Positions 8,545 to 36,384 are shown, counted from the stretch's first letter. The stretch is DNA of 36,384 nt from Macrostomum lignano (GCA_002269645.1 NIVC01004744.1:1-36384), one strand, 5' to 3'. The notes: generated from the sequence alone by a model not told the origin. Made by a program: numbers and translations.

Positions 8545-9095
8545 ACCTTACATAGCTAGGTAACATGAGTAAACAGGTAAACATAGGTACGTAGGTGAAC
8601 ATTTAGTATAGTTGGATGAGTAAAAAGGCAAACATGAGTAAATGGGCAAACATGAATAGATAGGCAAACATATAAGTACATAGGTAAACATACGTACATA
8701 GGTAAACGTGAGAAATAGGCAAACATTATTGAATAGGCAAACAATTTTGAAATTTACGTATGTAAACCTGTGTACCTATGTACGGGGAAAACCTATGTAC
8801 ATAGATAAACACGAATAAGTAGGCAACATGAGTAAATAGGCAACATGAGTAAATAGGTAAACATGAGTAAATGGGCAAACTTAAGTATATGGGCAAACAT
8901 AAATATATAGGCAAACTTGAGTAAATAGGCAAACTTGAGTAAATAGTCAAACATTAATAAATTGGCAAATATTTTTGAAATGCACGTAGGTAAACCTATG
9001 TACCTATGTACGAGGTAAACCTATGTACATAGATAAACATGAATAAGTACGCAAAAATGAGTAAATAGGTAAACGTAGGTACATATGTAAACATT
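8545..9095. repeat. Degenerate ~17-bp minisatellite (AACATGAGTAAATAGGC) with a ~230-bp higher-order duplication
   Basis: Repeated AACATGAGTAAATAGG/ATGGGC units; block from ~8719 recurs from ~8949. The ORFs called here are low-complexity artefacts. Confidence 0.8.
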
Positions 9096-14073: not shown

Positions 14074-17000
14074 TCAAGCGCATGTGTAGGGGATAACAAA
14101 ATCAAACATAATCTTAACAAATCCTTGGGTACTGTTCGTGTTGCCGCCAGTGGTGGCCACGCAGCCGCTACCGCCACAAAAGGAGCCGCCGCCTCCGCCA
14201 GAAAGATCGTCATCAAGTCCGGCTCCGCCTCCGCTGTAGCCGCCACCAGCTCCAGCGGCACCTTTGGTACCACCGTCGGCCGTAGCAGCTCCTCCGCCGC
14301 CACCGAAGCCGCCCAAGCCGTAGGAAGAACCTTGGCTGGAGGAGCCGCCAATCCAATTTTCATCTTTGCTACCACCTCCGCCACCATTTTCGCTACTGGT
14401 CGCAACGGCTGCTCTACCCTTCCAGCCGGCGCCGCAGCCACCGTAATTTTCGCCTGAGTCCGCACTAGACGGATCATTACTGCCCGGTTGTCCATTTGTG
14501 CCTCCTATACCGATCTCAAAGGGCTGCATAAAATGGTTGTGTGTTGTCGTGAGTAAAAAAGACTCAGTTTTAATAAGACAGTAAATTTATCAAGCATATT
14601 TTGTAAATATTTTTACCGTATTTTCCTTAGCTATATTCTTTTTAATAGTAACCATACGTATCGTTATAATTAATTGTAACATTCAATATTCTGCAATTTT
14701 TACTATAAGAAAAATATCAAGAAATGCTAAAAGTATTGTAGTAGCATTTTCTATTTTACATCTCAATCTTTTAGCTTTTCTCTATAGTACGAGCTATTTA
14801 TAGCGGTCGAGCCAAAGTGATAAAATTTTTAATATACAAGCTACAGCTCGATAAGTACTATAGCTAGCTACAACTAAAACTAAAACTACAGCAAGCTATG
14901 GGTCTTCAATACTTACCAGGCAAAGTATGATTCACTTTTAGAAATGCAAAAACCTCATTTCTACTACTAAGAACTACTAAAATGGATAAATAGAGTAGAA
15001 TGCGCATATAGTTTAATAGTATAGTAGAATGCGCTAATAGTATAGTATAATAGTATAGGAGTATAGTATAGTATAGTAGAATGCGCTATAATTTTTCACT
15101 ATAGCCAAATTTACATGTAAGTACTTTACGAATTTCACAACGGTGTCAAGATTTGATGCAACTCAGGTCCTGATACGGTTTATTCGAATTGTTTCTGGTC
15201 TCTTTTTGAACATTTTTAGTGAATACTTTGTGAAAACTTGCTGGGTTGTGATGACATTGAATCCTGCTTTAAAACTTAATTCTTTGGTCCTTTTCTAATC
15301 TACTTAGTAGACGGGGATCAACTAAATGAGAAGGCTTGTTTTGAGCTTTGTCAAAAGGCGTTTAGTAGCTATCAAAACTGATTTATTATCGAGCATTATC
15401 TAAACAAAGTGTCATAAAATTACCTCGCTTGAGCCGTAAGAGTTTGAACCGTTTCTTCCAGCCTGACCGGGGCGTCCTGAAGAAAAGTGTTTAACCTTTT
15501 TTCAGTGGATGTAAATAACTTTAGGTTTATTTAGTACCATTACGAGTATGCGGTCTGGAGCCAAATCACTATAAATATAGCAGACTAGGTTCGTGCAGAG
15601 ACTACGAGCTACCAAAGAAAAACTTGGCAAAATATAAATTAAATTTATTTCACCGATCTACTCTGGAGATAGTTTTTCACCATGTACGCGATAGCAAGTC
15701 ATTTAACTTCAAAGCTGACGAAATTTTTTAATTTGTGAAAGCGCAGATGTTTCTTTAAACAATGAAATTTAAAGCGTTCTGATTTTAAGTGTCAAGTCAA
15801 AATTGTGCCCTAAAGTTTATATACTTCGAATTAAGATATTTTGGAATATTCTTACTGATTAGTACGTATTGAAAAGGAAACTACTTAAAATGAAAAGGTA
15901 AACGAACCATCGTTGTCTCTGGAGGCTCCGCCGCCACCGCCAGCCGACATGAGCGGCTCACTGTCCGATACACGGTACACAAAACTTCCACCGCCGCCGC
16001 CGCTTCCAACATTTTCGGATATCGCGTGGCCACCAGCCTGACCAACGACAATGGACAGCACGCTGCCGGCCGTCAGGCTGACATTTCCAGCGACCAGGGC
16101 TCCCCTACCGCCATATTTTTCTCTGTCAAAGTTGCTACCACCCTTGGCTCCGGCAATCTCAATTCGATAACAGCCAGTCACGTTTATCGTTGTCTGCTGT
16201 ATGCTGCCGTTCTGACCAGTGCTGGTGTCTGAAATGTGTTGTCGAATTAATTTTTACTTAACTATGGTTACAAAATGCTTTTACGCTCGTAATACGAAAA
16301 GCAAGGCTTACTTGTGAAGAGAAGAGTGATGTTGGTGCTTAATATCAAATTAATCACAGCGTCGAAATTCTTCAGCTTGAAAACTTCAGAGCCAGGCTCT
16401 GTCCCCAGGACTCTGGACTCGCTAGATCCTTTTGAGACAGTCACCAGCCGGCAAAGACCGCTGCTCGGTCGGTACTCGAGAGCAACGCAGTCCCTCATCC
16501 GGCACAGAGTCAGGCAACCCTGCAGGGATTCCACTCCAGAGATGTTACTGACTTGGCTGCTGACTCCGGAGTTGATCGTAAGGACACCATTGTGCTGCGT
16601 GTAGCGAGCAGGATTGCAGGATCCTGCAAAGCAATTGTAGAGCGTTAAAAAAGCTGCACTTATGTAATCTCCTGGTCTCTGCTTCTCCTTGCAGGCAGGA
16701 TGCCTGTTAGTAGCACCGTCTGCACCAGTTGTGTAGGCCGCACGACTTGGCGCTGATGCTTAACTTGTCAGCCGGAGTCACGGACACCGCTAACGTTCAC
16801 TTAGAGTAGGGGTCGGCAAACTCCGGCCCGAGGGCCGCATGCAGCCCGTGAAGCCTCTCTCTCTCCGTCCCGTCGGGTAGAGAGTCTCTCTCTCTCTCTC
16901 GCCTCTCTCCTCTCTCCCCCTTTCTCCTCTCTCCCCTCTCTCCCACCTCTTCTCGCCTTTTCTCTACTCTCATCCTGTTTGTCGCGTCTCATCTCTCATC

Positions 17001-17190
17001 TTTTTTCTGTCCTTCCACTCTGACCCGAAGCCATCTACCAATTTTAGGTGGAAAATATTGCAGTTCCTTGACTTGAACGGATAATACAGAATCCATTATT
17101 ATGCAGATCAATTGACTTACCTTGAGCAGCATCGAAGCAAACACAGCAACAGACCAGAAGAATGAACAATCCGAAAATTATTGACTCCAT
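14074..17190 (-). CDS. Secreted protein, ~401 aa: signal peptide + PAN/apple domain + ALK/LTK-type glycine-rich domain; 5 exons
   Basis: Exons 17190-17121, 16623-16312, 16228-15908, 15476-15424, 14523-14074 have GT-AG sites and add to 1206 nt in frame. N-terminus MESIIFGLFILLVCCCVCFDAAQ; PAN pattern SLQGCLTLCRMRDCVALEYRPSSGLCRL; glycine-rich motifs YRIEIAGAKGG, GGRGA, LSIVVGQAG, GSGGGGGSFV, AGGGGG, GGYSGG, GGGGGSF, GFVKI. Confidence 0.85.
16807..16847 (+). mobile_element. Terminal fragment of a hAT (Charlie/Buster-like) element in intron 1
   Basis: TAGGGGTCGGCAAACTCCGGCCCGAGGGCCGCATGCAGCCC matches the typical hAT end plus subterminal GGCCC motif; the other end was not found. Confidence 0.55.
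16853..17010. repeat. CT-rich imperfect microsatellite
   Basis: (CT)n and CCTCT runs; the ORF at 16801-16992 is an artefact of it. Confidence 0.85.
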
Positions 17191-18013
17191 AACGAAATTT
17201 TAACGCGATCTTGCAAATATCTTTCCAAGCTCTAGAAGTCGGATGCCTACAGTTACCTTCTACGTCTTATTTTTGAAAGAATTCTATGTGAGCGTAAAGT
17301 TTTAGCTGGTTGCTAGGACAGCCACTCGCCATCGTCTACTGTATTCCTGCCTTCCTTGCGAGGCGCACGCCGCCCTTCCTTATATCTTATCCAATCCCAT
17401 GCTTAAGTTTTCTGAGCCCCAGATGCATGGCTCCCATGCAATGGCAGTTGTGAATACGACTTGCTCTTAAGGCTGTAAATTGTTCAATGGAAAATTCCTA
17501 CCGGCTGCTTCACCCTAGGCTAAAGCATGTGGATGAGTTGGCAGCTCCTCAAGGCTCTCTTTTTGAAAAGACTTCTGCTTTCTCGCAGTAGTTTTAACCA
17601 TGTCTAAAAGATAGACGCAGTTAGAGCCACAGCAGAAACTTTCTAGAAAAAAATGCTGAAAGAAAGCATTCTGCTTCCATCTTTACCTTTATAAACATTA
17701 CTTAGCTCGCAGGATTGCAATTCTGTAGTTTTGAGTAGCAAATCTACCAGGAAAGTATAGTTCTATCGAAAATGCGAGACACTGCAAGCCATATTATTCC
17801 AGACTTTTAAACTTTCAAATTTATCTACTATGGAGTGACTTTGTTCTCGCTAGCCAAGTAGATCCTTCACCTTTACAGGTAGCTCTACTGCTGCATCTAG
17901 TTAAGAAAAGTTAGCCTAGCTTATAGTTGAGCGTATGGATATCAAATTGCTTACGTCGACCCCGCGGGTAGCAGAAGCTATTACCATTTTTATCTGTTAA
18001 CTAATAAAAATAT

Positions 18014-18313
18014 TAATAATAATTGAGTACAACTGCCCCAATTGGGCCAGATGTGCAACCGACAGCTCAGCCGCAGCTATTGCGCGGTGCATCTGAAGGC
18101 TGCGTACGGCTGTTCATTCAAAGGAATGGGGGGGGTCGTCACACAAACCCAATCAGTTACCCCAGCTAATGCTGGCACCCATTTTACAGCTGGGTAAACT
18201 GAAGCAGTGCAGAGTCAAGTGTCTTGGCACAAATTGTTTCGAGTGGGTCGAGAATCGAACCTCCGACCTTCAAGTCGTGAGTCCGACGCTCTAACCACTT
18301 GGCTACAACTCCC
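18014..18313 (-). mobile_element. tRNA-derived SINE with a CORE-like central segment
   Basis: Minus strand: A box GTAGCCAAGTGG, B box GGTTCGATTC, then CAAGACACTTGACTCTGCACTGCTTCAGTTTACCCAGCTGTAAAATGGGT (resembles the MIR/CORE motif CTCAGTTT..CTGTAAAATGGG), ending in an (ATT)n tail. Confidence 0.8.

Positions 18314-19941: not shown

Positions 19942-20001
<60 letters not shown>
19942..20001. repeat. (AG)30 microsatellite
   Basis: Perfect dinucleotide run. Confidence 0.97.
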
Positions 20002-20054: not shown

Positions 20055-20411
20055 TCAGCGGCGTAGGCAAGGGGGGATATGGGGATGGATCCCCCCGTGG
20101 GCCTGGTCGGTGGGTTTTTCCGGAAACTGCGTAGCCAGACGTGAGGACATTTCCTTGAGTGTGAGGAAGGGATTTTCCTCCAGCGTCTCAGTCAGGAAGT
20201 CTCTCATCTCGTTGTCAGCCTTGCAATTTTCTTCTCTCCGACCGCCACGAGGTAGGGATTCAACTCTGCCATGGAGGCGGAACTCCGCAGCGATCCTAAA
20301 GGCGGACGCTCTCTTGATCTTGGGAATTTGAGCGGCAGCTAGGATGGTTGATCCATTGTTTACTGCGTCGATCAGACGCTGACGGTTTGCTGCAGGAATC
20401 GATGGTGCCAT
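20055..20411 (-). pseudogene. Truncated Tc1/IS630-like transposase, N-terminal DNA-binding part only
   Basis: MAPSIPAANRQRLIDAVNNGSTILAAAQIPKIKRASAFRIAAEFRLHGRVESLPRGGRR...ENPFLTLKEMSSRL: paired-like HTH, PRGG linker and second HTH; the frame ends before any DDE domain. Confidence 0.7.
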
Positions 20412-20791
20412 CACAGTGAAATCCAAGGGGTCAGATGCAACCCAAGGGGTGAAGAAGGAGAGCTGGCTGAGGGTCGGAGGGTTAGAGCGATATCTGAAGG
20501 CTTTCACACTCAGTCTCATATTGAGCGTCTTATTCTCATTTTGATATTCCATTTTTTAGTCTATGGCCAAGCCATTCCTGCAGCCAATACTGGGCATGCT
20601 CTGGCCGTGGCTAGCCTGGCCTTGCTTGCCCTCTGGTAAATAAACCAGATAACACCACAAGATAACATTCGCTCAAACAAGATAACATGCCCTATTCCGG
20701 TTATGCAAAATGTTATCTTGTATGAATCTTGTTTGCGTGACGAAATCTTACGTTTCCTTGTTTCAAACAAGATTCAAAAAGGATTTGCTGA

Positions 20792-21330
20792 CCAGATAAC
20801 AGTCGGGTAATTCATGCGAATCCTGCAGGGAAACATCGTGTTATCCTGTTTGTTATCTTGTTTGTTATCCTGTCTGGCAAACAGGATTCGTTGACCAGGT
20901 AACAGTCGGGTAATTCATGCGAATCCTGCAGGGAAACATCGTGTTATCCTGTTTGTTATCTTGTTTGTTATCCTGTCTGGCAAACAGGATTCGCTGACCA
21001 GGTAACAGTCGGGTAATTCATGCGAATCCTGCAGGGAAACATCGTGTTATCCTGTTTGTTATCTTGTTTGTTATCCTGTCTGGCAAACAGGATTCGCTGA
21101 CCAGGTAGCAGTCGGGTAATTCATGCGAATCCTGCAGGGAAACATCGTGTTATGCTGTTTGTTATCTTGTTTGTTATCCTGTCTGGCAAACAGGATTCGC
21201 TGACCAGGTAACAGTCGGGTAATTCATGCGAATCCTGCAGGGAAACATCGTGTTATGCTGTTTGTTATCTTGTTTGTTATCCTGTCTGGCATCAAACAAG
21301 ATTTCCTGATCAGATAACAGTCGGGTAATT
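20792..21330. repeat. Left subterminal array: 5 x 103-bp units plus a partial unit
   Basis: Units start at 20792, 20895, 20998, 21101, 21204 (CCAG(A/G)TAACAGTCGGGTAATTCATGCGAATCC...). Confidence 0.93.
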
Positions 21331-21557
21331 TATGATAATAAAAGGCAGAAGGCACCGACAATCAAATTTCGCAGTAAAGAAGCGTATAAAAAGTTGGTGC
21401 TTCAAGATGTTGTGAGAAGCATCTATTTAACAGCGGGGTGTCAACTAAACGGCATCTCAACATGAACGAAAACATCTGGAGAACAGTGTGGCATAAGTCT
21501 GAGTTTCGGGAGTCCAGTTATAAGTAGATCTACTTATACTGTGGATACCAATTGATA

Positions 21558-23183
21558 TTACTGGATTGGTGATCTGCTGCGACCTGGTGTATCAGCTGGC
21601 GAGCTCGGACCTGCTGTACTCGGACGCGACTCTGGCGGCAGTCGACGCGTGAGCCAGACGTTTGAAAGACCGGGTCGCGCCCGCGGACGGCGATTAATGA
21701 GACCGCCGACGGGGACTTGCATTATATGTCGGCGCAATGGAACGACTCTGTAGTATTAAGTTAAATTGAATGGCGATGGATGACAGTTTCTCCGACATAT
21801 ACACAGCTATAAAAAACACAGTAAGGTACATACACTCTCGATTGTCTAGCTCTAACAGACAGTGACGGTGTGCCGACAGGCATTGCCATATTATACGACC
21901 GTTCACAAGTAGCGTCAGCTGTGTCGATAGAAGTTTCATTCGTAGCATAGTCGTCATCCGGAAACAACTGGCTTTCGTTGATCGGCTGCTCGTAGACCGG
22001 AGACGAAGTGAATGTCGTGCCATCTGATGCGCCGGCTTGCGCGGCGATGGCTTCGTTGTGCAGTTGCGTCCACAAAATGCCGACTGCACTGGAAACAGCT
22101 CTTACCTGATTGTCTTTGCAATCCCGTGTGCCAACGGTAATATCCAACCGACTTGGCGTTGCAGATGTCGCTAGTGCGATGGACGATCGTCCAACGGCGT
22201 CATCAACTGCGTCGTTCGAAGCAGTGACACCCTCTGGAAACAAGTGGCTTTCGTTGAACGACTGCTCGTAGACTGGAGACGAAGTGAATGGCGTGCCATC
22301 TGAAGTATCCGCTTGCGTTGCGATGGGGTCCTCGTGCAGTTGCGTCCACGAAATCCCGGCTGCGCGAGGGAAATATGTTACTTGATTGCCGCCGATCGGC
22401 GGTGTATTAAAGCCAGCCCACCAGACAGACATTAGCGAGCCGCAGGGAGCAGCGATATAGGATGGAACTACGCCAGCAGTTCCGCTGGTACGACCTACTG
22501 GTTCCACTGGCAAATCAGCCAGAAATAGTTCCAGTCGTACTACCTCTTGACGCAAGTAGCTGCCCGTGCTGCAGCCGCCGCATGCTTGTCTACGGCAACG
22601 CGGACAGCGAGGTGTCGTGCAGTCGACAATCTACAGAATTAGTTGTATATAGCGGCTGGTTTCGTTAAGGTCAGTTAGTTCGATAAAAAGTAAAACAGGT
22701 TATACGTACGTATGTGCATCCCGTATATACGTGTAGGATGTTACTAGGTACAATATTGACAGAGCGTTTGTCTGGACGACCGGGCGGTGCAAAAATTGTC
22801 GGTCGGCGCAACAGAATAACATCGCCACGACGCAACGGCCCAATCTGCGAGCGTACGCTGCCTTGGACACTGCAACCAATCATCCCGGTTGGGTCGCATG
22901 CATCAATTGTAAAAGCCGACGAGGATGACGCTGAGCAGATCTGCTGGTCGGTAACTCGTTGAATAAGTAGCAACAATATCGGAATCCTGTTCGTTGAGTC
23001 GCGAATGTGGCCGACAGTACAGAACTCTGACAGCTTCGTGCACAATTCGATCCCGATGTCGCCGATGGCGTTTCTCCAAGCAGGTGTATTCCATATGGAC
23101 TCCGAAAACGCATACTTTGCGTCGTCGGTACTCAGTCGCAGCGTGCTTAATGGACCAACCGTGCGATTTGAAGCGCTGGACAT
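21558..23183 (-). CDS. HROB/MCM8IP (DUF4539)-like OB-fold protein with a Cys cluster and low-complexity tail; probable exons 23183-22710, 22630-21834, 21747-21558
   Basis: WNTPAW..AIGDIG...NRIP.LLLLI...DPTGMIGCSVQGSV....LRRGDVILLRRPTIFAP......VNIVPSNILHVY matches the HROB OB-fold pattern (DPTG.M.G.VH, L..G.VLLL, F.P, N.T..N..HIY). Donor GTACGT at 22709 and acceptor at 22631 join in phase to ORF 21761-22555. The last exon and the true start are less certain. Confidence 0.72.
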
Positions 23184-24252
23184 CTGTAACAGAGAGAAGT
23201 GGAGGTTGTTCGGTGAGACGGCGTGGCCCGAAAACAGCGTCGGACACCAGCGATCATGAGATGGGAGACAGGATTGAAAGGACGTTGCATGGGTATTTGT
23301 TATTACCATTGACTTAACATAACTCCGCATATAATACAACTAACTCGGCACCCAGACACAAGTCTGTTGGGACAGAGTCCAGACCTCTAGCAATTGATTT
23401 AAATCAAAACGGGTCGTCCCCTAGAACTCGCACTACCACTTTTTCGGAATCTCGGCAAGACAGTACGTATGAAATGACTTAAAAGACGTAATAAAAATGT
23501 TCAGTATTTTTCATTTATAGTGGTGCCAAAAAGCACGACAATAAAGACATTAAAAAAGCAGCTAGGAAAAAGATTGGAAAAGCTGTATGTGTTATAAGTA
23601 ATACTTTAGAATATTATTAGTACTGTTAACGTATGTGGACGTTGTAGATGAAACTGACGTACGTGCTGCACTCGTTGATCCATGTTTACGGGGGAAACAC
23701 GTGCCCGAGGGCCCTCCTAGTACTGTAGGAGATGAATTCGTGTTATAAAAATAGATACTGAGTCACACAACATTACGTACTTTCTTAGAGAACTCATGCC
23801 TTCATTAAGTCAAGTAGGTGCACCGAATATGGTTCTAGTTCCCAAGGTATAATAGAGTTACACAGTATTACGTGCATTGGGGCAATTAGAATTCCCACGT
23901 ATAAGTACGGACTCCTGGATCATTTTTCGCGACAAGAAGTTGTGTCTGGCCTTTCTAAGTGCACGCCTACTTCAAATCGCAAGTCGCACTGAACATGAAA
24001 CAGTAAACCGTAAACGTTGAACAGAAAAAAAACTGGAAAACTGAAATATGAAGCACACAAAGATGAATGGCAAAATGCCGGACGAAATTTCAAACGATTA
24101 TCGTCCTGAATTAAAATAGCAGATCTGCTATGGGACGAAGTACTGTGTAAAAAAACAAACAAAAACAGTAAGTTCATTGTGCGAAAACAATTTATAGTAT
24201 TAATCCGTTATGATCCGTTATCCTATAAAACTACTCAACGCCGACAGTCAGC

Positions 24253-25896
24253 CTAAGGTTCGGCGGCTCCCTCGACGGCTTCCTCGGCTGTGCCGGCCAG
24301 CTGTGTCTTCTTAGCGGCGCGCCATCTTTTAACAGCGTCGGATTTTTTAGCCTTTTCTTCCGGAGTCTGCCTGCGTTTTATGGCCGTCTCGCGGCACTGA
24401 TAGTGCTGACGCCGAAACTCCTTTTCGTCTATGTTTACGCCAACGTGCTTGGCGTATGCCATAGCCACGGCTAGCTTGCCGTCGTCACATCGCTGGCCAC
24501 CTACTTGACCCTTGACGCGACCCGAGCAAGTCTCCCGCAAAAACTGGTCCTCGCTGAATAAAGCGCGAAGGACCGCTCGTATAAATGAGCCATTAGCGGT
24601 AGCCAATTTTTTTGCATCTGGCCGATCGGCCGATGCCAGTTGATGAATGGCTTCCGTTCGCTGCTCGATTTCGCGCTTGTCTTTCGGCTCTACTAGTATT
24701 CTCCTAAAGCCGTTGTCGTTTGACAGGCGAACCAATGCGCTTGGGTTGACTTCACGTGGCCGCATTGAAACAATAGCGTCGGCAGCCTGCACAGCACCCA
24801 TAGTCTGCTTCATTTGCGCCGACTGGTCAGTGGACCAATGGCTGTGGGCATATATACCAACTTCTCGAGGTTCGTCATCGATTAAAATGGGACCAGTTTC
24901 GTCTTGCCGATCGGCATACTCTGCGTCGACACTATCAGAGCCTCCGATTGTGCATCTGGCAGCATGTACTGCACTGAGTAGTCGCTCACACCGGCGCTCA
25001 ACCACGCTCATAACCTGCTGCATTTTGGCGTCTCGACTGGAGTCAGTGTTCCCGTTCTGCGCCATTTGTTCTTCAAGCGAATGCAGTTGAGCGCGAAGTT
25101 GATCAACTTCGTTCAACAACTGTGTGTTACTTTGCGCCAGATGTGCCGAACGTTCCCTCTCATTTTCAATTTCATTTTCCAGAGCCCGAATGCGATCACC
25201 TGTGATGAAGTGCGTTCAGATAAATATATAGAGTTGCTCTTATAGAATAATTTATTGACTACGTATTACATACAAATATATTGAAATTACGCAGTAAACC
25301 AATAGTTACGCACGTTGCTCGTCCACAATGGAAACATGCGAGCGCAATTGGTTGGTTAGTGCACAACACGAACCACAAGGATTCGGCGCACTATTAGTTT
25401 GCAACGGGCCCGACGCGGATGCGACGCGTTGCGCAGCAGCAATGCTACTGTAGGGTCCACTCCATATAGTGGCGCCATATCTTGCGGCCGAGGCAGTCTT
25501 TGTTTTGGCTGTCACGACGACAATGCGACAACCAACAGTGGGTTGCTCATGACGATCGTCAAGAGCAACAATATCGGTGCTAAGTATCGCACCTCTGTCG
25601 TTGTTGCTGTCGTAAATGACCGCCCACGCGGACGAATCTGCAGATTTGTAACCGCGCATTCCGTCAGGGGCACATTCTGCACTTGCACTTTTATTTTGGC
25701 GGTTCTTCTTCTTTGTTGACCTCGCGCTGTCGGACCCATCGAATATTTCCGACTGAATTTCCGACGAAGCTTTCGGGACTGTCGATTGGTCGTTTGGTCG
25801 TACACCCTTGCGCGGTCGCTTTTCGGCTTGTTCTGCGTCTATATCCACTGGATGTTCGTCCTCTTGTAAGTGAGTAACGCAGTTCTTCTTGCCCAT
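24253..25896 (-). CDS. Coiled-coil + C-terminal BEN-domain protein, ~509 aa, exons 25896-25314 and 25199-24253
   Basis: Phase-1 intron 25313-25200 joins the two long ORFs. Heptad region RIRALENEIENER...LLNEVDQLRAQLHSLEEQ. C-terminal FIRAVLRALFSEDQFLRETCSGR...DDGKLAVAMAY...FRRQHYQCRE fits the BEN pattern (F.R.LL..LF..E.L...T..G...LD..K). Confidence 0.7.
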
Positions 25897-26676
25897 TACT
25901 TTCCAAATCAAGCAGACGACTGGAAAACGATTTTTAACAGCATATTTACTTCAAATATCGCATTGTACAATGTTTAAGAATAGAAAAGGACGCTCTCAAG
26001 ATACGATCCTAATTTCCACAAAATCTTACGTACACGCTAAAGTTAGATCTAAGGAATTTCGTTATAGGGAGAGTGGACGGCCAACCAATCGATGTGGTGA
26101 ACTACATGCTAGGTTCGATGCAACGTTGCAATCACGAAACACGAGACATAGTGTAATGATGGACGCAAAATGCGTGAATTGCGCATATTTACTGATTGGT
26201 GTATGATACGAGGTCCGTTATGATTCATTTTAATGAAAAAATTAAAACGGCAGATTTCATACATATTTAAAGTGATTAAGATTCATTCACATTGTCGTCA
26301 TAGTGGTTGTGGAAGTATACTGGTGTATAAACGAATGACCATTGGTGTAAAGATCGTGTAAACTTGTGAACCTTCGCCTTATTTAATGCCTGCGTGAATG
26401 AGTCTTATAACGTTCATAGATAAAGTTGAAGGCGTTTATAAATAGGGTGGCAACATACAGTGGAACAGATTTTATCTCAGCAATGAGCGGTACTATACTT
26501 GACGTTACAAAGACTGCTTAATCAGTTCGTACAAATTGTGGGGTATACGCAAACAAACGTTTGAGGTGACAGCTTACTTAAAATTGTCTTTTCCGCGAAC
26601 TTATTAAGCAACGTCAATACATTACAATGGGCTTGGACAGTACAAGGAGCACACAGGCGTATAGGCCCGAGCAAAT

Positions 26677-29457
26677 TCACGAAAAAGATAGTTGCGCATG
26701 CGGCAGCGCTACTACATGCGTGTCGCTGACAGCACATGATCCCACAATCATTTTGATAGGAACACGAATAACATAGCCGCCAATGTCACCGAAGGGATCG
26801 CAAGCCAGCTTCCGGACGTGGATGAGTCGGCAACCTCGATTTGGCGCATCAACCGGAACGGCCACGAGCACTGATAGAGGATCCTCCATCGGTGCGGCCA
26901 GACGGAGCGGTTGCATCAGTAGATGTAGATCGCCTACATCCTCATCCTCTTCCAATTCGTAGACGCGACCAAAGTCTATCGCTGACCGACCAGCGTCAGT
27001 CCAGACGGCAACAAAGCTGGAGACAACTCTTTTCTGTGACATAGATTGTCTGAACACATCGATCATTGTGCCGTCATGCAATGTAACTCGCTCCCATTTA
27101 CTCGGGTTTCCAGCATATCTTCTAGGTCGTGAAACTGTGCCACACCTGATGTTCTTCGTTGTCATGCGTCTGGCTACTGGCGTGTCAGTCAACTGAAGAT
27201 CTTCAGTTGTCTTGTCCGCCAATTGTGCCACTAATAGCTCAGTTTGGATGACGTTCGCTATTTCTACGTCGGTCGCTCGCGAACCGCGTATGCGTTTACG
27301 AATACTACAATGAAATGACTCGAACAGCGATGCTGATAACTGGTGTATTGGCCCTGCCAACTCTGCGTGCATCAGGGTATGCACGCATACCTGATGAGCG
27401 TTATAAGTCAATGCCCGATTCGAGAACATCATCGGGAGTAGGCGATGGAAGTACGATAATGTCGTTCGCACATGTGTCAGCTCGCGGATCGAGGAACCAA
27501 CGCATGACAATGCGAACATTGCGGACGATAGAGCCAGCAGTAGCTGATAGTACCTGCCGTGATCATAGCATGCAAGGAAATCTTCCAGTACCATCGGACC
27601 GTAAGCTAACATCCACATTTCAAAATCGTGGCCCCGATACCTCTTCAATAGGTTTAGTGACCTTGGTCCGCGTCTCTGAACACTACGCGGCACTCGAATT
27701 CTTGCGAGCCGTTCATCAATCAGGCTAATCCGTCGGTACAAATCGGGGTTTCTCGACGTCTGGTCTGGCTTTTGATGTCGTATTAGGAACAACTGGTACA
27801 TCAGATAGCCGGTCAGACCAGCACAGGTTTGGTGCAAATAACACGGCGGGCAACCCCTAATGTAGTCGAACCCGGCCAGTTCACTCAGTGGAGACTTGGC
27901 TCGCACTCCAAGCGTGTCTGTCTTGTCGTCAGTACGAGCCACGCGCATTCTGTCTCTTTCATATTCGTGCCGATCGGCAAGCATGTTAGTGTCGGTGACG
28001 CACCGAAACTCTGTCTGTGTACACCCACGTCTGACAGCGGCGTTCAGCATAGCGTTGGTGATTTCGAGCGGAAACATACGTCCGGATCCAAACGGCTGTT
28101 TTTTTGTTCGAATATAACATTTTTCGCATCCGTATATCGCGTTGAATCGCTTCATACCTAGTGCATCCGCTCGTGCTGGGGCATCGAAGATGGCCTGGAA
28201 AGGGTGCAATCTAAGGATTTGCTTATCGCCGTGTCCGTCTACATATTCGACGCCTTGGAACCTTAGATCGTTCAACAGACGAACAACAATTGGTAGGAAA
28301 CTTTCCGCATGCAATTTAACGTGTCCAGCCCAGACTCCGCATACAATCACGTACTTATACTTCATGCGTTCGTACACCTCTGTTACAGACATGTACACTG
28401 GACAGACCTCGACGTTACTGCTTTTCCGCAACGAAAATCCGTCTGAACATAGCGTGTACGACAGATCGCATCTACGTCGAGGTTCAATCGACGCTAGGAA
28501 CTCCCTGTACAGTGCACTGTTGACGTAGTGTAACTGACGTCTAAACATGTCGTCTGACGGTTGATCAGCCGGCCACACAACAGTCTCCAGCATTCCGCGT
28601 CGGATGCAGCGCCGAAGTTGATCTTTTGCGTCACATAGCCAGAAGCTTGCAACTTCTTCGCTACCGCAAGTTGAACACGTCGGCGCGTTTCGACCGAGTC
28701 GATTTTGTCTACACTTCGCACACACAGTGTAGCATTCTGAGGTCGGTAATGCAGATCTGCATTCTTGTCGAAAGCGAGCTTTCACAACCTCAGAAAGTAC
28801 ATGCGGCGACCGCGGCACATCAGCGCTAGGCATCAGTTTGCGTAATAAACCTAGTAGTTCTCTTTTCTGCTCTCTGCATGCTTTCCACTTGGAGCAGTAG
28901 TCCGCAATTAATGTGGCCGCTTCTCCTGTCGTTAGAAGCACATCCGCTTCGGCTATTTTATGAAATGGTCTGTCTATGAAAATAGGATCAGCTCTCGAAC
29001 TGGCTGGATCGCTCTGGTCGGATGCGTCGCTGCCCTCCTCATTGAGGCTGGCTGGGTCGATCTGGTCGGATGCGTCGCTACCCTCTTCGTTGAGACTGGC
29101 TGGGTCGCTCTGGTCGGATGCGTCGCTGCCCTCCTCATTGAGGCTGGCTGGGTCGATCTGGTCGGATGCGTCGCTACCCTCTTCGTTGAGACTGGCTGGG
29201 TCGCTCTGGTCGGATGCGTCGCTGCCCTCCTCATTGAGGCTAGGGACCAGAGTGTTTGATGGCAGATCTGCCAGATTCGCGCGTTTGTCGCGTAATCGAC
29301 GTTGCCGTAATGCTTGCATTCTCTGCTGGCCAGTCAATGCGGGTGCGGCCCTTTTACGTATGCCAAGCCGCCAATTTCTCATATAGTGCGTTGCATTGTG
29401 CGTTTCGTCCGTCTGTTCCGGCCCTGCAGACTGTGCTGAGGTGCCGGCCTTGTCCAT
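26677..29457 (-). CDS. CACTA/EnSpm-family DDE transposase, 926 aa, intronless
   Basis: Motifs in the expected order: CSDGFSLRKSS, VCPVYMSVTE, CGVWAG, FDAPARA, FNAIYGCEKC, GVRAKSPL, CYLH, IDERLARIRVP, YGPMVL, TYNAHQ, SASLFESF (Transposase_21/DUF4218-type). Confidence 0.88.
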   Translation of the reverse strand: MDKAGTSAQSAGPEQTDETHNATHYMRNWRLGIRKRAAPALTGQQRMQALRQRRLRDKRANLADLPSNTLVPSLNEEGSDASDQSDPASLNEEGSDASDQIDPASLNEEGSDASDQSDPASLNEEGSDASDQIDPASLNEEGSDASDQSDPASSRADPIFIDRPFHKIAEADVLLTTGEAATLIADYCSKWKACREQKRELLGLLRKLMPSADVPRSPHVLSEVVKARFRQECRSALPTSECYTVCAKCRQNRLGRNAPTCSTCGSEEVASFWLCDAKDQLRRCIRRGMLETVVWPADQPSDDMFRRQLHYVNSALYREFLASIEPRRRCDLSYTLCSDGFSLRKSSNVEVCPVYMSVTEVYERMKYKYVIVCGVWAGHVKLHAESFLPIVVRLLNDLRFQGVEYVDGHGDKQILRLHPFQAIFDAPARADALGMKRFNAIYGCEKCYIRTKKQPFGSGRMFPLEITNAMLNAAVRRGCTQTEFRCVTDTNMLADRHEYERDRMRVARTDDKTDTLGVRAKSPLSELAGFDYIRGCPPCYLHQTCAGLTGYLMYQLFLIRHQKPDQTSRNPDLYRRISLIDERLARIRVPRSVQRRGPRSLNLLKRYRGHDFEMWMLAYGPMVLEDFLACYDHGRYYQLLLALSSAMFALSCVGSSIRELTHVRTTLSYFHRLLPMMFSNRALTYNAHQVCVHTLMHAELAGPIHQLSASLFESFHCSIRKRIRGSRATDVEIANVIQTELLVAQLADKTTEDLQLTDTPVARRMTTKNIRCGTVSRPRRYAGNPSKWERVTLHDGTMIDVFRQSMSQKRVVSSFVAVWTDAGRSAIDFGRVYELEEDEDVGDLHLLMQPLRLAAPMEDPLSVLVAVPVDAPNRGCRLIHVRKLACDPFGDIGGYVIRVPIKMIVGSCAVSDTHVVALPHAQLSFS
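29002..29241 (-). repeat. 5 x 48-bp (16-aa, SLNEEGSDASDQ(S/I)DPA) acidic coding repeat in the transposase N-terminus
   Basis: Alternating variants give a 96-bp higher-order period. Confidence 0.93.
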
Positions 29458-30559
29458 CCTGGAGAAGTCAGATTTCGACTGTTCTGTAACGAAACGGTAT
29501 AATAATAATAATCGGAGGAACTACATGACATTCATGTATGCAATAGGTTTAGATGAATGTGTCAACTCTATATAGACGTGGGTAGCTATTCTAGATCACT
29601 ACGGTATCCTACTTAAAATGAGGGGATCAATGACTTCTGCTAATACTACTGATTATTGATTGTGATTGATTGATTAGTGATACTGATTGTTACTACATAC
29701 GATTGTTCTAACATATGGGCGGATGAACGGTGACACTTGAATTTTTGCAATAGAAACCATGACTAGATAGTTCAATGAAATGAATGCAAGGCAATGCAAT
29801 CGGGATCTGTAATAAAACGGAAGCACACGTTTTCGTAAAAAACAAGTTAAGTAACAAGAGGTGGAATTTGCTTACTGGGAAATGCATAAAAGTCAATAAT
29901 GAGATAGGATGGATACGAATAGTTAAAAGAAAACATAATTGCACAAATGTAACGCGTAATAATGTCATATTAAAGTACTTAGGTTTCGATATGTTCTCCG
30001 TTTGTTGGCTGGCAGATTTGGCCTGCTAGATTGTTCATCTGCTGCTATAGCTACCAAACGGTGCTATATTCACTCTGCTTTTATCTTCACTCTGATGTAA
30101 CGGCGCTCAACGGCGCTCAACTGCACTGTCCTCAGTTACTAATAAATGAAAAAATGGTACGAAACTGCAAGCATCAAATGCCGAACTGACAAGTAAGTAA
30201 TAAACGAAAAAATACTTTACTAGTTACTTGGGTACGCGGGTTTGGCATCCGATATTCGAATACGGCCAAACCTCTGTACTTTGGCTGGCAGATCTGCCAG
30301 CCTCCGCACAGACACCAGACTGGCCACATTTGCCCTTCTAGATTGTTCAGAAGTCCGTTCTGACAGTTTCTGTGCACGCGTATTCAATTTCAACCGATAA
30401 CAATTCACAGCTAGAACAGGTACATAACATACGTCCAATTACAGTCGGAACTGGGCCTTGGATCGGGGCAGGTGCACTTTATCCTGCACGAACACCTGGG
30501 ACTGCAGAAGCAGTGCACTCGATGGGTGCCCCGTTCGCTGTCACAGAAGCAGGGACGGG

Positions 30560-30930
30560 CCAGGGAGGACTGGTGTGGGAAAATGTTAAGAGAATTCGCC
30601 TGAGGAGTATCAAGGAAGGTTTTTGACATCGTTAGTGGTGATGAGACCTGGGTGTACCAGTACGATCAGAGCCAAACCGTCAGTCGACAGTATGGTGCTT
30701 CTCCGGAGATGACCATCCAACCAATGTGCAGAGGCCCCGTAGTGTCAGAAAGAAGATGGTCGCATCTCTCAGCACGGTTGACTTATGACTTCCGTAGCAA
30801 AAGGGAGTCAAGTTGGTCTCCCACCCACCCACCTTACTCAAATGACATGGCCCCCTACGACTTTTTTGCTTTGTTTCGTTATTAGCATTATAACCATACC
30901 ATTCTAAAAAGTTTCGGATTGACCCTCGTA
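30560..30930 (+). mobile_element. Internally deleted mariner remnant nested in the giant element
   Basis: DIVSGDETWVYQY (30625-30663) and HPPYSNDMAPYDFF (from 30826) are the mariner TGDETW and YSPDLAP motifs, only ~190 bp apart. Right TIR ...TTTCGGATTGACCCTCG + TA ends at 30930; left TIR not found. Confidence 0.75.
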
Positions 30931-30992
30931 TACAGGGCCGCAACATGCACAAAAACTGTCCGACTGAACTATACAAAAATAGACACAACGCT

Positions 30993-33093
30993 TCACAAGT
31001 CACAAATTAGTTCATGAACCGGGCAATCGCCGTCCCTGTGCGTACACTCTGGACCAAAGTCCTTCGGTATGGAGCACAGCAACTCGTCGATCGACGGGTT
31101 GTCTGTGCTACACGCGGCATCGGCATGTCGAGTGGCAAGCAGGCGCGGGACGCTGACCCTGTCAGGCAGTAGGCCCATGCTGTCGAAAGCGTCTCTGCGA
31201 CGCGTCGCCTCGTCGCCGGCGCACTTTAACAGTTCAACGCTGGGCTCGCCGGCATTAAAATTTAAATAATGGCCTTCTACGACCACAGTCATGATGCTGT
31301 AGCATAATACAATATGCTGCAGACACCTCAGCTCGTTTGGCCCAGCTTTAAGCAGTCTGGCGCAGGCGTCGCCGAGCAGTGCGTCAGTTATTCGGCGACG
31401 ACCGCCGCCACTGTTTCCCTGACGCCCGCCAAGCTGCTCAGTATACCCAAACTCCATGAACAGCGCCTGCGATGCCGTGCACAGCGGTGCATCGCAATCG
31501 ACACTGTCCTGCATACTGTGGTATGCAGGCTTTGATTTTGAAGGCAGTTTAAACGCTTTCAGCGTATGCCGAAGCATATACTGGGCCGCGTCAAAGTTAG
31601 AAGTGCCGTGTCGATGGTTTAGAGTCTGATGCAGACCCAATACAAGCACGGCAAGACGCTGGGCTAGTAGTCCGTTCTCTATGTGCAACACCATTGTTGA
31701 CTTGGCCAAGCAGATCTGCTGGCCCTCGTTGATGAAATGATTGGTTAAAGGCTGCACCAAACGTGCTACATTGGCCGGCCAGTCGAAAATTGACACTGCA
31801 GTTAGTGCATCGCACCCGCATTGTACGGCGCGTATGCGCGCCTCTTCCCTGCCTGCGGAGATGGCATTTGCATGACGCTCTCCGAGTGTCAGGCGGCGAT
31901 TTGGTGGGTTTAGCGGCTGAAACACTAATTGTTGATTTTGTACACAAAGTCGAAAAACGTCCTCACAGTGCGTGCCGACGAAGCCGCTAATGTCACGGTC
32001 GGCCATCGATGTACTGACACCGCGAATAGCATATGCTAATGGCTGGCTAGTCAGCATTGAGAACCGCCGTTCAACTGTGTCAAATGGCGTGCCACATTCA
32101 TCTCCCGCGTCCACTATGGCGCACAGTATACGGACGATTGACTCTATACACATCATCTGCAAAGGTATTATTGTATGCGCGTTTATCAGTAGCATTGCTA
32201 TGGCATTACAAGCAGTATATGAATAGTCGAATTCTACTTACGCGTGCGTCGTCCATAATTTCAGCGAAAGTTTTTCTAATCGATTCGACGGCGGCAGCGT
32301 CTGCAGGGTCGACGGATGCAGCTGCGACAGGAGCGCAATACTGGCCGCGACGCTGGGCGTTGGCTGGCAGATCTGCCGGCCGCCGCCCATGTGTCGGCTT
32401 TGCCACCTGGCCGGAAGGTGTTTGCGCTGATGCCGCATTTCTTGGTGGTCCCCTGCTAGGACAGTCGTTCTGAGCTGCTGCAGCTGCGATAGGTGCGCGA
32501 GATTGGCCGAGACGCTGGGCGTTGGCTGGCAGATCTGCCGGCCGCCGCCCATGTGTCGGCTTTGCCACCTGGCCGGAAGGTGTTTGCGCTGATGCCGCAT
32601 TTCTTGGTGGTCCCCTGCTAGGACAGTCGTTCTGAGCTGCTGCAGCTGCGATAGGTGCGCGAGATTGGCCGAGACGCTGGGCGTTGGCTGGCAGATCTGC
32701 CGGCCGCCGCCCATGAGTCGGCTTTGCCACCTGGCCGGAAGTGGTTTTCGCTGATGCCGCATTTCCTGGCGTCTCTTCATCGACGACGATGTCGCTGCCG
32801 TCGACGTGCAGCAGCCCTTTGCAGTGCACATTCACGAATTCGCGCACACTAGCGCAGCCAACGCTCTGGACTGCCTCAACAAGCGTTTGGCGCCGGACAG
32901 CTTGGCACGTTTTGTTGATTTCTGTCAAACTTTTACGAGTATTCCTTTGTTCAAATGATTGCTGTGGCCGAGGTACACGAATCATTGTTATTAGCTGTTC
33001 GCGCAGCTGCGTGACCGAGTAGTCGACACAGTTTGTACCAATGGTGGTTTGCATTTCGCAGTATGATGCAAGGTCTGAAATTGCAACATACAT
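30993..33093 (-). CDS. ~671-aa protein with two LOTUS/OST-HTH-like domains separated by a repeat linker, plus a C-terminal domain of unknown type; exons 33093-32242 and 32156-30993
   Basis: Perfect GTAAGT donor (32241) and TTTGCAG acceptor (32157) join ORFs 32206-33093 and 30993-32195 in phase 0. Two related segments: KSLTEINKTCQAVRRQTLVEAV.SVGCASVREFVNVHCKGLLHV and VRILCAIV...CGTPFDTVERRFSMLTSQPLAYAIRG...ISGFVGTHCEDVFRL. The gene model is well supported; the LOTUS call is a by-eye match. Confidence 0.6.
32343..32770 (-). repeat. ~2.6 x 162-bp (54-aa) coding repeat
   Basis: GACGCTGGGCGTTGGCTGGCAGATCTGCC at 32349, 32511, 32673. Confidence 0.93.
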
Positions 33094-33542
33094 TTTTAAT
33101 TGTATCGTCGAATTGAACGCACGGTGTTAAAGTACATGTTCTATCTCAGTGAATATTTCTGCCAACTGCAATTAATGATAAACATTTGCTAAAATTACTA
33201 GCTGCATACAGGTACGAATATATGTATACTAGTCTCCTGCCAACGTCCATACACTGAACCATCAAAGATACTAAAAATGGGAAAAAATGCTTCATTGCTT
33301 GCTTGTATTCTGATATACTAACAAAATTTCCTATACACTAAAGTTGAGCTATATGTAGTTATCAGTACGATATGCGCTCCGTTACCCTTTGATATACGCG
33401 CTAGTATAATGAAACTACCAATTTTAAAATGATAAGAAAGAAATGAATGCAGAACACGTAAACAGACAAACTTCTATTCGTAGATTTATTTATGTCAGCT
33501 GTACAGGATCTGTACGACAATACCAAGACAAGATTACCGACT

Positions 33543-33857
33543 GCTGCCTTGAACCACACTAGAAGCGAGGATTGATTATCCGTCGCAGGTCAGCTTATCA
33601 AAGCTGCCTTGAGCCACACTAGAAGCGAGGATTGATTATCCTTCGCAGGTCAGCTTATCAAAGCTGCCTTGAGCCACACTAGAAGCGAGGATTGATTATC
33701 CGTCGCAGGTCAGCTTATCAAAGCTGCCTTGAGCCACACTAGAAGCGAGGATTGATTATCCGTCGCAGGTCAGCTTATCAAAGCTGCCTTGAGCCACACT
33801 AGAAGCGAGGATTGATTATCCGTCGCAGGTCAGCTTATCAAAGCTGCCTTGAGCCAC
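33543..33857. repeat. 60-bp satellite array 1 (5 units + partial)
   Basis: GCTGCCTTGAGCCACACTAGAAGCGAGGATTGATTATCC(G/T)TCGCAGGTCAGCTTATCAAA head to tail, no spacers. Confidence 0.95.
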
Positions 33858-35436
33858 AACAGATATGGTTACCGACCGTTGTAGTCTGTATAGACTACTC
33901 GCTTGACTTGATCTGCTCACGGCTGGTGCAACTGCAAACGCCTTAGACAAACCAATGGAGCATGCACCGACAAAAATCGGGTTAGCGTCTATCTTAATAG
34001 GAAAGTTGCTTTGCATACTGGGCCAGATAGAGCTATTTGGAACCATGCCACAGTCTCCGTCTAGACACCCAGCTGTGCCAAACAATATGGTTGGCTGACT
34101 ATGCTTCTAAGCGTCAAATATGACGATAGAATCATTCAGCCGGTTGACACACTAAGCAGCTTTGATAGACTACATGCCAGTGGTAGTCAAACCTCTCGCA
34201 AACAATCAGGGCGCAACAATTTTTCAATTGTCACCTGTACGGAGGATGGGCACAGCCTCACATTACGGACGCTACAGTGCCGCCGTAAAGCAGATCAATT
34301 CACCTTGCACTTTCGAGGCTTTATTATCCCTCGGATTAAAGATTGATCCGCCTAGTCAAATAAAAGTGACTACTCTTAGCCGCTGCCTTGAGCCACACTA
34401 GAAGCGAGGATTGATTATCCGTCGCAGGTCAGCTTATCAAAGCTGCCTTGAGCCACACTAGAAGCGAGGATTGATTATCCGTCGCAGGTCAGCTTATCAA
34501 AGCTGCCTTGAGCCACACTAGAAGCGAGGATTGATTATCCGTCGCAGGTCAGCTTATCAAAGCTGCCTTGAGCCACACTAGAAGCGAGGATTGATTATCC
34601 TTCGCAGGTCAGCTTATCAAAGCTGCCTTGAGCCACACTAGAAGCGAGGATTGATTATCCGTCGCAGGTCAGCTTATCAAAGCTGCCTTGAGCCACACTA
34701 GAAGCGAGGATTGATTATCCGTCGCAGGTCAGCTTATCAAAGCTGCCTTGAGCCACACTAGAAGCGAGGATTGATTATCCTTCGCAGGTCAGCTTATCAA
34801 AGCTGCCTTGAGCCACACTAGAAGCGAGGATTGATTATCCGTCGCAGGTCAGCTTATCAAAGCTGCCTTGAGCCACACTAGAAGCGAGGATTGATTATCC
34901 GTCGCAGGTCAGCTTATCAAAGCTGCCTTGAGCCACACTAGAAGCGAGGATTGATTATCCGTCGCAGGTCAGCTTATCAAAGCTGCCTTGAGCCACAACA
35001 GATATGGTTACCGACCGTTGTAGTCTGTATAGACTACTCGCTTGACTTGATCTGCTCACGGCTGGTGCAACTGCAAACGCCTTAGACAAACCAATGGAGC
35101 ATGCACCGACAAAAATCGGGTTAGCGTCTATCTTAATAGGAAAGTTGCTTTGCATACTGGGCCAGATAGAGCTATTTGGAACCATGCCACAGTCTCCGTC
35201 TAGACACCCAGCTGTGCCAAACAATATGGTTGGCTGACTATGCTTCTAAGCGTCAAATATGACGATAGAATCATTCAGCCGGTTGACACACTAAGCAGCT
35301 TTGATAGACTACATGCCAGTGGTAGTCAAACCTCTCGCACACAATCAGGGCGCAACAATTTTTCAATTGTCACCTGTACGGAGGATGGGCACAGCCTCAC
35401 ATTACGGACGCTACAGTGCCGCCGTAAAGCAGATCA
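33858..35436. repeat. Near-identical 440-bp direct duplication (33858-34297 and 34997-35436), each copy following a 60-bp array
   Basis: Constant offset of 1139 bp; the ORF track also shows identical ORFs at 33816 and 34955. Confidence 0.93.
34382..34996. repeat. 60-bp satellite array 2 (10 units + partial)
   Basis: Same unit as array 1, starts at 34382 and every 60 bp to 34982. Confidence 0.95.
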
Positions 35437-35976
35437 GTTGTCTCATTAGGGCGAGGTTTCATTACCCCTCGCTTCTTAAGAGGAATTAGCGCCGCTGACC
35501 AAACGGATGCCAGGGATTGCCTGATGGGATAACCATTTGCTGGGGTCTGTATTCAGCGGTTTTCCATCGGAGGCTTCCTCTCAAAATCCCCATGGTACTT
35601 GTAATGGATGCCCGACTGATTCCCACTGGTCCTAAAATTTTTCCGGATCATCACCGCCTGGTACTTGGCTGAACTTCGGCTCAAGGGGAGCTGATCTGGA
35701 TGATTTTTCCGGATCACTGGGGAATTCCGACTGAAGTCTCGAAATCTCACCCGGAGCATTTTCATCTGGAATCCTACTGAAATTCGGTCTACACCCAGAA
35801 TTCAGTAGAGTTCTGGGTGAAAACTTGACGGAAAATCCAACCGGAACAGTTTCCTTTTCCCAAAATACTACCAGATCATATTTCTGGACCTTTTTCCGGG
35901 AAAAAAGTGCTGTTCCGTGCCAAAAAAACTGATTCGGGCTTCATCAGAAATAATAAATTAAAAATCGGGCGAAAAT

Positions 35977-36384
35977 CCGATTCAAACAAGATTCAGTCAA
36001 ACCAGATAAACATAGAAATATCTGGTGGCGAATCTTGTACTGTTATCTGATTTTCAAACAAGATTCGCGCATGTTATCGGGCGAAATTCCGATTCAAACA
36101 AGATTCAATCAAACAAGATAACAAAAAATATCTGGTGGCGAATTTCTACTGTTATCTGATTTTCAAACAAGATTCGCACCATGTTATCCTGGTGAAATTC
36201 CGATTCAAACAAGATTCAATCAAACAAGAAAACAAGAATTATCTGGTGGCGAATCTTGTCATGTAATCTGATTTTCAAACAAGATTCGCGCCATGTTATC
36301 TGGTGAAATTCAGATAACTCACCAGATAACAGTCAAACAAGAAAACAAAAATTATTGGTGGCGAATCTTGTCATGTAATCTGAT
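35977..36384. repeat. Right subterminal array: ~111-112-bp units, continuing past the window end
   Basis: CCGATTCAAACAAGATTC at 35977, 36089, 36200; shares CAAACAAGAT, GTTATC/GATAAC and GCGAATC with the 103-bp left array. Confidence 0.88.

Follow-up and report, generated by a model that had tools for sequence, protein, structure and literature searches.

A candidate CACTA/EnSpm-type transposon of at least 15.8 kb with a BEN-like accessory gene and HROB-like cargo in Macrostomum lignano

Introduction

Four long genes that lie on one strand between two repeat arrays built of the same short motifs raise the question of whether such a locus is a single transposon that carries host-type genes or a composite of repeats and host genes lying side by side. 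The question is addressed here for a stretch of 36,384 nucleotides from the flatworm Macrostomum lignano (GCA_002269645.1 NIVC01004744.1:1-36384), referred to below as the window, which is eukaryotic and in which transposable elements (TEs) are abundant. An annotation made from the sequence alone (the original prediction) had read positions 20629-36384 as a giant CACTA/EnSpm-like element with a cassette of LOTUS-like, transposase, BEN and HROB-like genes. The answer that is preferred here, at a probability of about 0.62, is that the region that starts at 20629 and extends past 36384 (at least 15.8 kb) represents a single copy of an animal transposon of the CACTA/EnSpm (CMC) type, autonomous now or until recently, with the HROB-like gene and an orphan gene, g1, as its cargo. 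The predicted arrangement of long, intact and co-oriented genes between two motif-sharing arrays was found in full by means of open reading frames (ORFs), splice sites and repeat search: the four genes all lie on the minus strand, none of them contains an internal stop, and three have canonical GT..AG introns. The interpretation put on this arrangement by the original prediction is supported in part.

Transposase

The transposase gene (26677-29457, minus strand) consists of a single exon (29457-26680) and encodes a DDE transposase of 926 aa, for which a word-indexed search returned one relative, P0001, at 45% identity, and an exhaustive phmmer search returned 3085 homologues. Three of the distant homologues, P0010, P0011 and P0021 (phmmer E from 1e-32 to 1e-26), match the Pfam family PF02992 Transposase_21 with 30.7, 38.2 and 31.2 bits, respectively, the cut-off being 28.6; Pfam Plavaka is matched by P0011 as well. 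In an alignment of 20 sequences, which spans the clade of the window's transposase as well as distant homologues, the DDE triad formed by D339 (DGF), D425 (DAPAR) and E713 (FE) is invariant, and so are the zinc-finger cysteines C246, C249 and C261. The Transposase_21 matches of the homologues and the invariant residues argue, by transitive homology at the level of sequence, that the enzyme is a divergent member of the CACTA/EnSpm superfamily with its catalytic residues intact, in agreement with the original prediction. A search of the PDB with the transposase gave no match. The N-terminal part of the protein contains five acidic repeats of 16 aa (DPASLNEEGSDASDQS), encoded in frame by a 48/96-bp tandem repeat at 28999-29241.

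Relatives and termini

The protein P0001 is encoded by a 10.2-kb Tara Oceans contig (L001), which contains a complete element of 9.9 kb bounded by terminal inverted repeats (TIRs) of 33 nt (97% complementary, at 97-129 and 10011-10043). The order between the two TIRs is an array of three 153-bp units, 3.3 kb without ORFs, the transposase, a two-exon accessory gene, whose stop codon is 343 bp from the terminal array, and an array of 2.5 units of 111 bp. The arrays of L001 are unlike in their units (153 and 111 bp) and have common motifs, and the same layout, with the motif orientation mirrored, is found in the window. The second relative with both ends, L002, comes from M. lignano itself (GCA_002269645.1) and is an element of about 13.9 kb, bounded at 9053 and 22906 by two exact copies of the 14-nt TIR CCCGATTGAAAATC. 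The motif TCGGCACT is present 42 times in L002 and, with one exception, its copies are confined to the two ends, where their orientation is mirrored.

The left TIR of the window, CCCTCTGGTAAATA (20629-20642, plus strand), starts with CCC and is similar to the termini CCCGCTGAAAAAATCG of L001 and CCCGATTGAAAATC of L002, the three having the pattern CCC-K-M-T-K...AAA in common. The animal elements of the CACTA superfamily (TRC elements) have been described as having CCC termini, with a 2-bp target site duplication (TSD) in about 50% of the copies (PMC1636069). Since the pattern is common to three termini and the published animal ends begin with CCC, the left terminus at 20629 that had been proposed earlier is well supported, with the reservation that an inverted TIR-like copy at 21424-21437 (below) complicates the left boundary. 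The right terminus of a single element would read ...TATTTACCAGAGGG and would be expected within a few hundred bp past the right array.

Candidates for a right TIR inside the window were rejected, the other CCC[GT]CTG sites being unrelated, save the one at 21437. The latter belongs to the inverted TIR-like copy CCCGCTGTTAAATA (21424-21437, minus strand), which agrees with the left TIR in 12 of its 14 bases and is the sole inverted partner-like sequence of that TIR inside the window; by our estimate about 0.2 matches are expected window-wide at no more than two mismatches to the 14-mer, but the significance is uncertain, the pattern having been defined after both sequences had been seen.

Subterminal arrays

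The left TIR is followed by a subterminal region (20643-21334), in which scattered motifs precede a tandem array of 5.4 copies of a 103-bp unit (20775-21334; 96% matches by Tandem Repeats Finder), the sequence being motif-rich from 20629 onwards. The right subterminal array (35964-36384) is made of 3.8 copies of a 112-bp unit and runs off the end of the window. The repeat units of the two arrays differ, whereas the short motifs are common to both. Thus, the 10-mer CAAACAAGAT occurs 16 times in the window, with every copy located at 20674-21302 or 35983-36285, against about 0.16 copies expected by chance, and none of 100 shuffles reached 16; nine copies are in the left subterminal region and seven, all on the plus strand, in the right array. 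The motifs CAGATAAC and GCGAATC are likewise concentrated in both arrays, and the left subterminal region contains CAAACAGGAT, CAGATAAC and GCGAATC in both orientations. The motif orientation is mostly mirrored, being mainly minus in the left array and entirely plus in the right one, as expected for the opposite ends of one element. The predicted subterminal repeats are therefore present at both sides, and within the window their short motifs are confined to the two arrays.

Several TTTTCCGG(A/G) motifs, loosely like the CCGG-based subterminal motifs of L001, were noticed at 35450-35960, between the satellite block described below and the right array.

Accessory gene

Directly downstream of the transposase is the accessory (TnpA-analogue) gene (24253-25896, minus strand), which encodes 509 aa in two exons (25896-25314 and 25199-24256 plus stop) separated by an intron of 114 nt (25313-25200). 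The protein has a W..GP domain at its N-terminus, then a CxxC motif and a coiled coil, and at its C-terminus a domain of about 120 aa. In L001, homologues of both exons (E = 2e-10 and 5e-13) lie downstream of the transposase, single accessory ORFs with the same architecture are found directly downstream of the transposase in L002, L003 and L004, and P0004 is a gene model in which the transposase and the accessory protein are fused. The accessory gene is conserved, accordingly, beside the transposase in five relatives (L001-L004 and P0004), and supplies the second protein that CACTA elements encode besides the transposase.

The BEN identity given to this gene by the same prediction was met by mutually consistent signals that stay below threshold, and by no match above a cut-off. 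The accessory protein of the window has no match to Pfam BEN (PF10523) even at E <= 10. The best-scoring member of the family, the C-terminal domain of P0004, gave 18.2 bits (E = 0.003), below the cut-off of 23.2, and BEN is the sole Pfam family matched by more than one accessory member (two of six). The profile of the C-terminal domain (alignment A2) had two matches in the PDB, both of them sub-threshold and both to BEN structures of NACC1 (E = 0.13-0.19); with a sixth sequence added (alignment A4), three of the five matches were BEN, with BEND6 (7yul) at the top (E = 0.07) and NACC1 again. The NACC1 structures concerned are 7bv9 and 8yzs, with E ranging from 0.13 to 0.8. The full-length accessory profile returned nothing but coiled-coil noise from the PDB, and the N-terminal domain had no match there. 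The C-terminus of the accessory protein is probably, on these profile comparisons, a divergent BEN domain.

HROB-like gene

The HROB-like gene (21761-23183, minus strand) encodes 447 aa in exon 1 (23183-22710) and exon 2 (22630-21764 plus stop), around an intron of 79 nt (22709-22631); the splice sites were read from the sequence, with an alternative donor at 22730. The OB-fold that had been ascribed to this gene is confirmed by Pfam HROB (PF15072), which the ORF matches with 36.6 bits (E = 4.3e-9) and the spliced protein with 34.8 bits, against a cut-off of 30.8, over positions 2-83 of the 85 of the profile. The OB-fold is followed by a cysteine motif and then by two repeats of about 45 aa. 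The ORF had no match in the PDB. Human HROB is known for its MCM8-MCM9 interaction motif and for the binding of single-stranded DNA (ssDNA) (PMC7290032, PMC11055865).

Two M. lignano gene models include TE-derived stretches with an identity of about 74% to the last exon and 3' region of the HROB-like gene. Because it recurs in at least two other genomic contexts, in these two unrelated models, the 3' exon is repeated DNA and not a single-copy host locus. The two models, P0151 (UniRef A0A1I8HEW7, 'LAMTOR5') and P0152, are chimeric annotations with transposon-derived stretches in shifting frames. The possibility that the HROB-like segment is a nested TE was considered and rejected, as flanking repeats were not found.

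The search of L001-L004 with tblastn revealed neither a g1 nor a HROB homologue. The HROB-like gene and g1 are additions to the core of the family, since the complete relative L001 is without both, and we infer that they are lineage-specific cargo captured by the element. Additional ORFs of another kind are present in L002, where F-box-like/LRR (leucine-rich repeat) ORFs at 15159-17368 are inserted between the transposase and the accessory gene (Pfam F-box-like, E = 1.4e-5, above cut-off).

Orphan gene g1

The orphan gene g1 (30993-33093, minus strand) encodes 671 aa in exon 1 (33093-32242) and exon 2 (32156-30996 plus stop), with a phase 0 GT..AG intron of 85 nt (32241-32157). Codon usage in exon 2 follows that of the transposase in the frame of the ORF only (correlation r = 0.67 versus 0.06 and 0.12 in the other frames), and g1 is therefore regarded as real coding sequence. 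Its protein includes three repeats of 54 aa, corresponding to 162-bp repeats at 32317-32769. The LOTUS-like character that had been attributed to g1 found no support in the searches: exon 2 and its first 112 residues have no Pfam match at E <= 10, and g1 has no PDB match at E <= 10 and no homologue, the word-indexed homology search having given no matches at all.

A palindrome, TGGCTGGCAGATCTGCC(A/G)GCC, occurs once in each of the 162-bp repeats of g1 exon 1 (32361-32382, 32523-32544 and 32685-32706) and again in the spacer between g1 and the transposase (30282-30303), with weaker copies at 30006-30022 and at 29256-29272, the last of them in the 5' part of the transposase ORF. Ten matches were counted against none expected, and the palindrome could be a protein-binding site instead of, or besides, coding sequence.

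Internal repeats and neighbourhood

The part of the locus between g1 and the right subterminal array is occupied by internal 60-bp satellite arrays (33543-33858 and 34382-34997), found by repeat search within a block of about 1.14 kb that is duplicated (33543-35440). The arrays comprise 5.3 and 10.3 copies, 98-99% identical, and the same unique segment, about 0.5 kb in length, comes after each, the whole of 33543-35440 being a recent internal duplication. The short ORFs in this block had no Pfam match, and a USP/UCH-like fragment that had been suspected there was rejected on the same result.

Outside the element, a decayed Helitron is located at 797-6693 on the minus strand (Pfam Helitron_like_N, E = 1e-52; PIF1, E = 4e-33), with its ORFs (Helitron_like_N, PIF1 and the Pif1 2B domain) broken across several frames and with a 69/138-bp tandem repeat (6008-6353) inside the 5' coding part. 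The ORF at 20055-20552 (minus strand) has a homeodomain-like HTH_32 match (E = 5e-4) and resembles an N-terminal piece of a Tc1/mariner-type transposase; an (AG)30 microsatellite (19942-20001) marks its end, and it adjoins the left terminus of the CACTA-type element. Two glycine-rich ORFs on the minus strand, at 14074-14529 and 15885-16181, may be exons of a host gene, the latter matching the Pfam ALK/LTK glycine-rich domain (E = 3e-10). Tandem arrays of other kinds are present at 495-744 (20-bp units of the CTCATAATTTGTCAC type), at 8234-8432 (a perfect 99-bp duplication) and at 8557-9069 (an 18-bp array with a 228-bp higher-order repeat). The Rfam and tRNA scans of the window gave no matches.

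Discussion

A number of observations weigh against the reading of the locus as one element. The right TIR and any TSD fall outside the window, and the completeness of the element is unproven. A TSD is visible in neither relative, the flanks being AT versus CC in L001 and AG versus TC in L002, and the candidate TSDs considered there were rejected as inconsistent. A second full copy of the element was not retrieved by exact-protein look-ups of the transposase, P0151, P0152, P0004 and P0008 or among the metagenome contigs, in which the scan with the transposase alignment matched 58 pattern stretches, none of them confirmed, and a 30-mer of the left array was matched exactly nowhere; the look-up of P0007 yielded no more than a contig of 1.4 kb. 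The transposase of the window itself reaches no Pfam transposase threshold, the only match being DUF4218 at E = 0.042, the BEN signals are sub-threshold, and the single-sequence AlphaFold2 (AF2) models of the accessory protein and of g1 are unusable, with a predicted local distance difference test score (pLDDT) of 43.5 and 36.1, respectively. The copies of the HROB-like exon elsewhere in M. lignano are apparently frameshifted in comparison with the window, which argues against strong selection on those copies. Finally, the inverted 14-mer at 21424-21437 might close an 809-bp unit, in which case the HROB-like gene would lie outside the demonstrated boundary.

The inverted copy could indeed be the end of an 809-bp unit (20629-21437) similar to a miniature inverted-repeat transposable element (MITE), or it could be a relic. 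If the former, the locus would be composite, with a separate non-autonomous element of TIR, array and TIR lying next to an autonomous copy that is truncated or has other bounds, and with the HROB-like gene, and perhaps g1, outside of both as host genes or another repeat; this is possible but unlikely. It is in keeping with such an arrangement that CCCTCTGGTAAATA (20629, plus) and CCCGCTGTTAAATA (21437, minus) enclose the whole left array, and that L001 is complete without the HROB-like gene and g1. However, the 809-bp unit has the left-type array only, while a deletion derivative should retain both end types, and the left and right arrays of the window, unlike in unit yet sharing motifs, are matched in this by the two ends of L001. 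Moreover, L002 has an orphan internal TIR-like 14-mer (18242-18255, 12 of 14 positions) with no motif array beside it, so that such copies can be relics or due to chance. The 809-bp unit also has no flanking TSD (TG versus GT), M. lignano has several copies of the HROB-like 3' exon, and the genes, all in one orientation, are closely packed. Because of the left-type array standing alone, the unlike ends of L001 and the orphan copy of L002, the composite arrangement is ranked below the single element. That the transposase-derived gene and its neighbours are an immobile cluster of domesticated host genes, with ordinary satellites for arrays, is very improbable: a single copy was seen, a TSD is not demonstrable, and the transposase clade is divergent, with CP for the WP motif and without the box A D described in PMC1636069, but the catalytic triad is intact, a family-typical TIR stands directly at the outer edge of the arrays, the relatives have perfect or near-perfect TIR pairs, fragments of the element are found at other M. 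lignano loci, and the neighbourhood is rich in other TEs.

For the single transposon, which is thus preferred, the analogy with TnpD and TnpA of maize En/Spm suggests that the DDE transposase would cut at the CCC-type termini, and that the BEN-like accessory protein would bind CAAACAAGAT and CAGATAAC in both arrays and help to bring the ends together. The role of the cargo is a matter of speculation: the HROB-like protein, as an ssDNA-binding recombination factor, may aid the repair of the gap at the donor site, and the cargo may aid the evasion of silencing. The original prediction had gone further, to a toolkit for self-recognition, repair and silencing evasion, which is likewise speculative. 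In its stronger form, the HROB-like gene and g1 would be selected because they serve the element, the former by promoting repair of the excision gap by homologous recombination (HR) and a LOTUS-like g1 by countering germline small-RNA silencing. The intact frames and clean introns of both genes, the transposase-like codon usage of g1, the genuine HROB-family match of the OB-fold and the precedent of fungal EnSpm and Plavaka elements that have captured TET/JBP genes (PMC12730594) speak for it, but a LOTUS signal was found by no method, the ratio of nonsynonymous to synonymous substitution rates (dN/dS) is not estimable from one copy, L001 and L002 manage without either gene, the exon copies in M. 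lignano look frameshifted, and the part of HROB that binds MCM8/9 was not recognized in the HROB-like protein. It is doubtful, therefore, that the cargo has such functions. More doubtful still is the far-reaching model in which an animal CACTA clade uses a BEN-domain partner for end binding and one of its lineages has recruited a HROB-type OB-fold factor, by which the excision gap would be directed to HR repair from the sister chromatid and the transposition made effectively replicative, with g1 as a further factor serving the element.

The animal elements of the CACTA superfamily are poorly described, and the locus together with its relatives gives a complete picture of one clade, with termini that start with CCC, subterminal arrays that differ between the two ends, a DDE transposase and a partner protein that is conserved. 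If the partner is a true BEN protein, this would be a concrete link between BEN proteins and transposons and a testable analogue of maize TnpA, and if it binds the ends as well, the spread of BEN in animals would be tied to transposons. It appears that entire genes of host type are taken up by the clade, such as the HROB-like and orphan genes here and the F-box gene in L002, and the clade is thereby a candidate gene-capture system of autonomous animal DNA transposons. A recombination OB-fold in a cut-and-paste element raises the question of whether the cargo influences the repair of the donor site. For genome annotation, it is of importance that exons derived from this transposon family have been fused into M. 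lignano gene models, e.g., LAMTOR5.

Comparison with known systems

The nearest described elements are SmTRC1 and the other animal TRC elements (PMC1636069), to which the element of the window is alike in the homology to the Transposase_21 family, the CCC at the start of the left TIR, the internal tandem repeats, the second protein encoded downstream and the flatworm host. The differences are in the size, at least 15.8 kb here versus about 4.7 kb in SmTRC1, in the transposase, whose clade has C-P and not W-P in motif I and an altered box A, and in the gene content, which includes the BEN-like accessory protein and two extra genes. The animal TRC group is what we take to be the EnSpm/Mirage-type CMC elements in the terms of Repbase.

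In maize En/Spm, TnpD is the transposase and TnpA binds the subterminal 12-bp motifs (PMC1636069). The two-protein system, the short motifs in both orientations at both ends and the DDE transposase of the same superfamily are common to En/Spm and the present element. However, the termini are CACTA there and CCC here, the accessory protein has no sequence relationship with TnpA, and the genes of the window look like separate transcription units, in contrast to the alternative splice forms of En/Spm.

With regard to cargo, fungal EnSpm, Plavaka and KDZ transposons have captured TET/JBP dioxygenase genes (Kojima 2025, PMC12730594). They are comparable as CMC(T) members with an intact host-type gene besides the transposase that plausibly benefits the element, while the cargo here is another (an OB-fold recombination factor and an orphan gene), the kingdom is another, and one copy was read. 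An OB-fold protein that binds ssDNA and is of host origin is also found in a DNA transposon in the case of Helitrons, which encode RPA70-like OB-fold proteins of this kind and to whose rolling-circle Rep/helicase chemistry the binding of ssDNA is obviously useful; the element of the window is, in contrast, of the cut-and-paste DDE type, and its OB-fold is of the HROB family and not of RPA. In plant elements of the Pack-CACTA and Tgm-Express type, host sequence is captured between the ends, with the Pack-type elements being non-autonomous and carrying gene fragments, whereas the element described here keeps its own genes and the frames of its cargo are complete. A transposon with captured cargo is thus not unprecedented; what is new is an animal element of the CACTA type with a BEN-like partner and HROB-like cargo.

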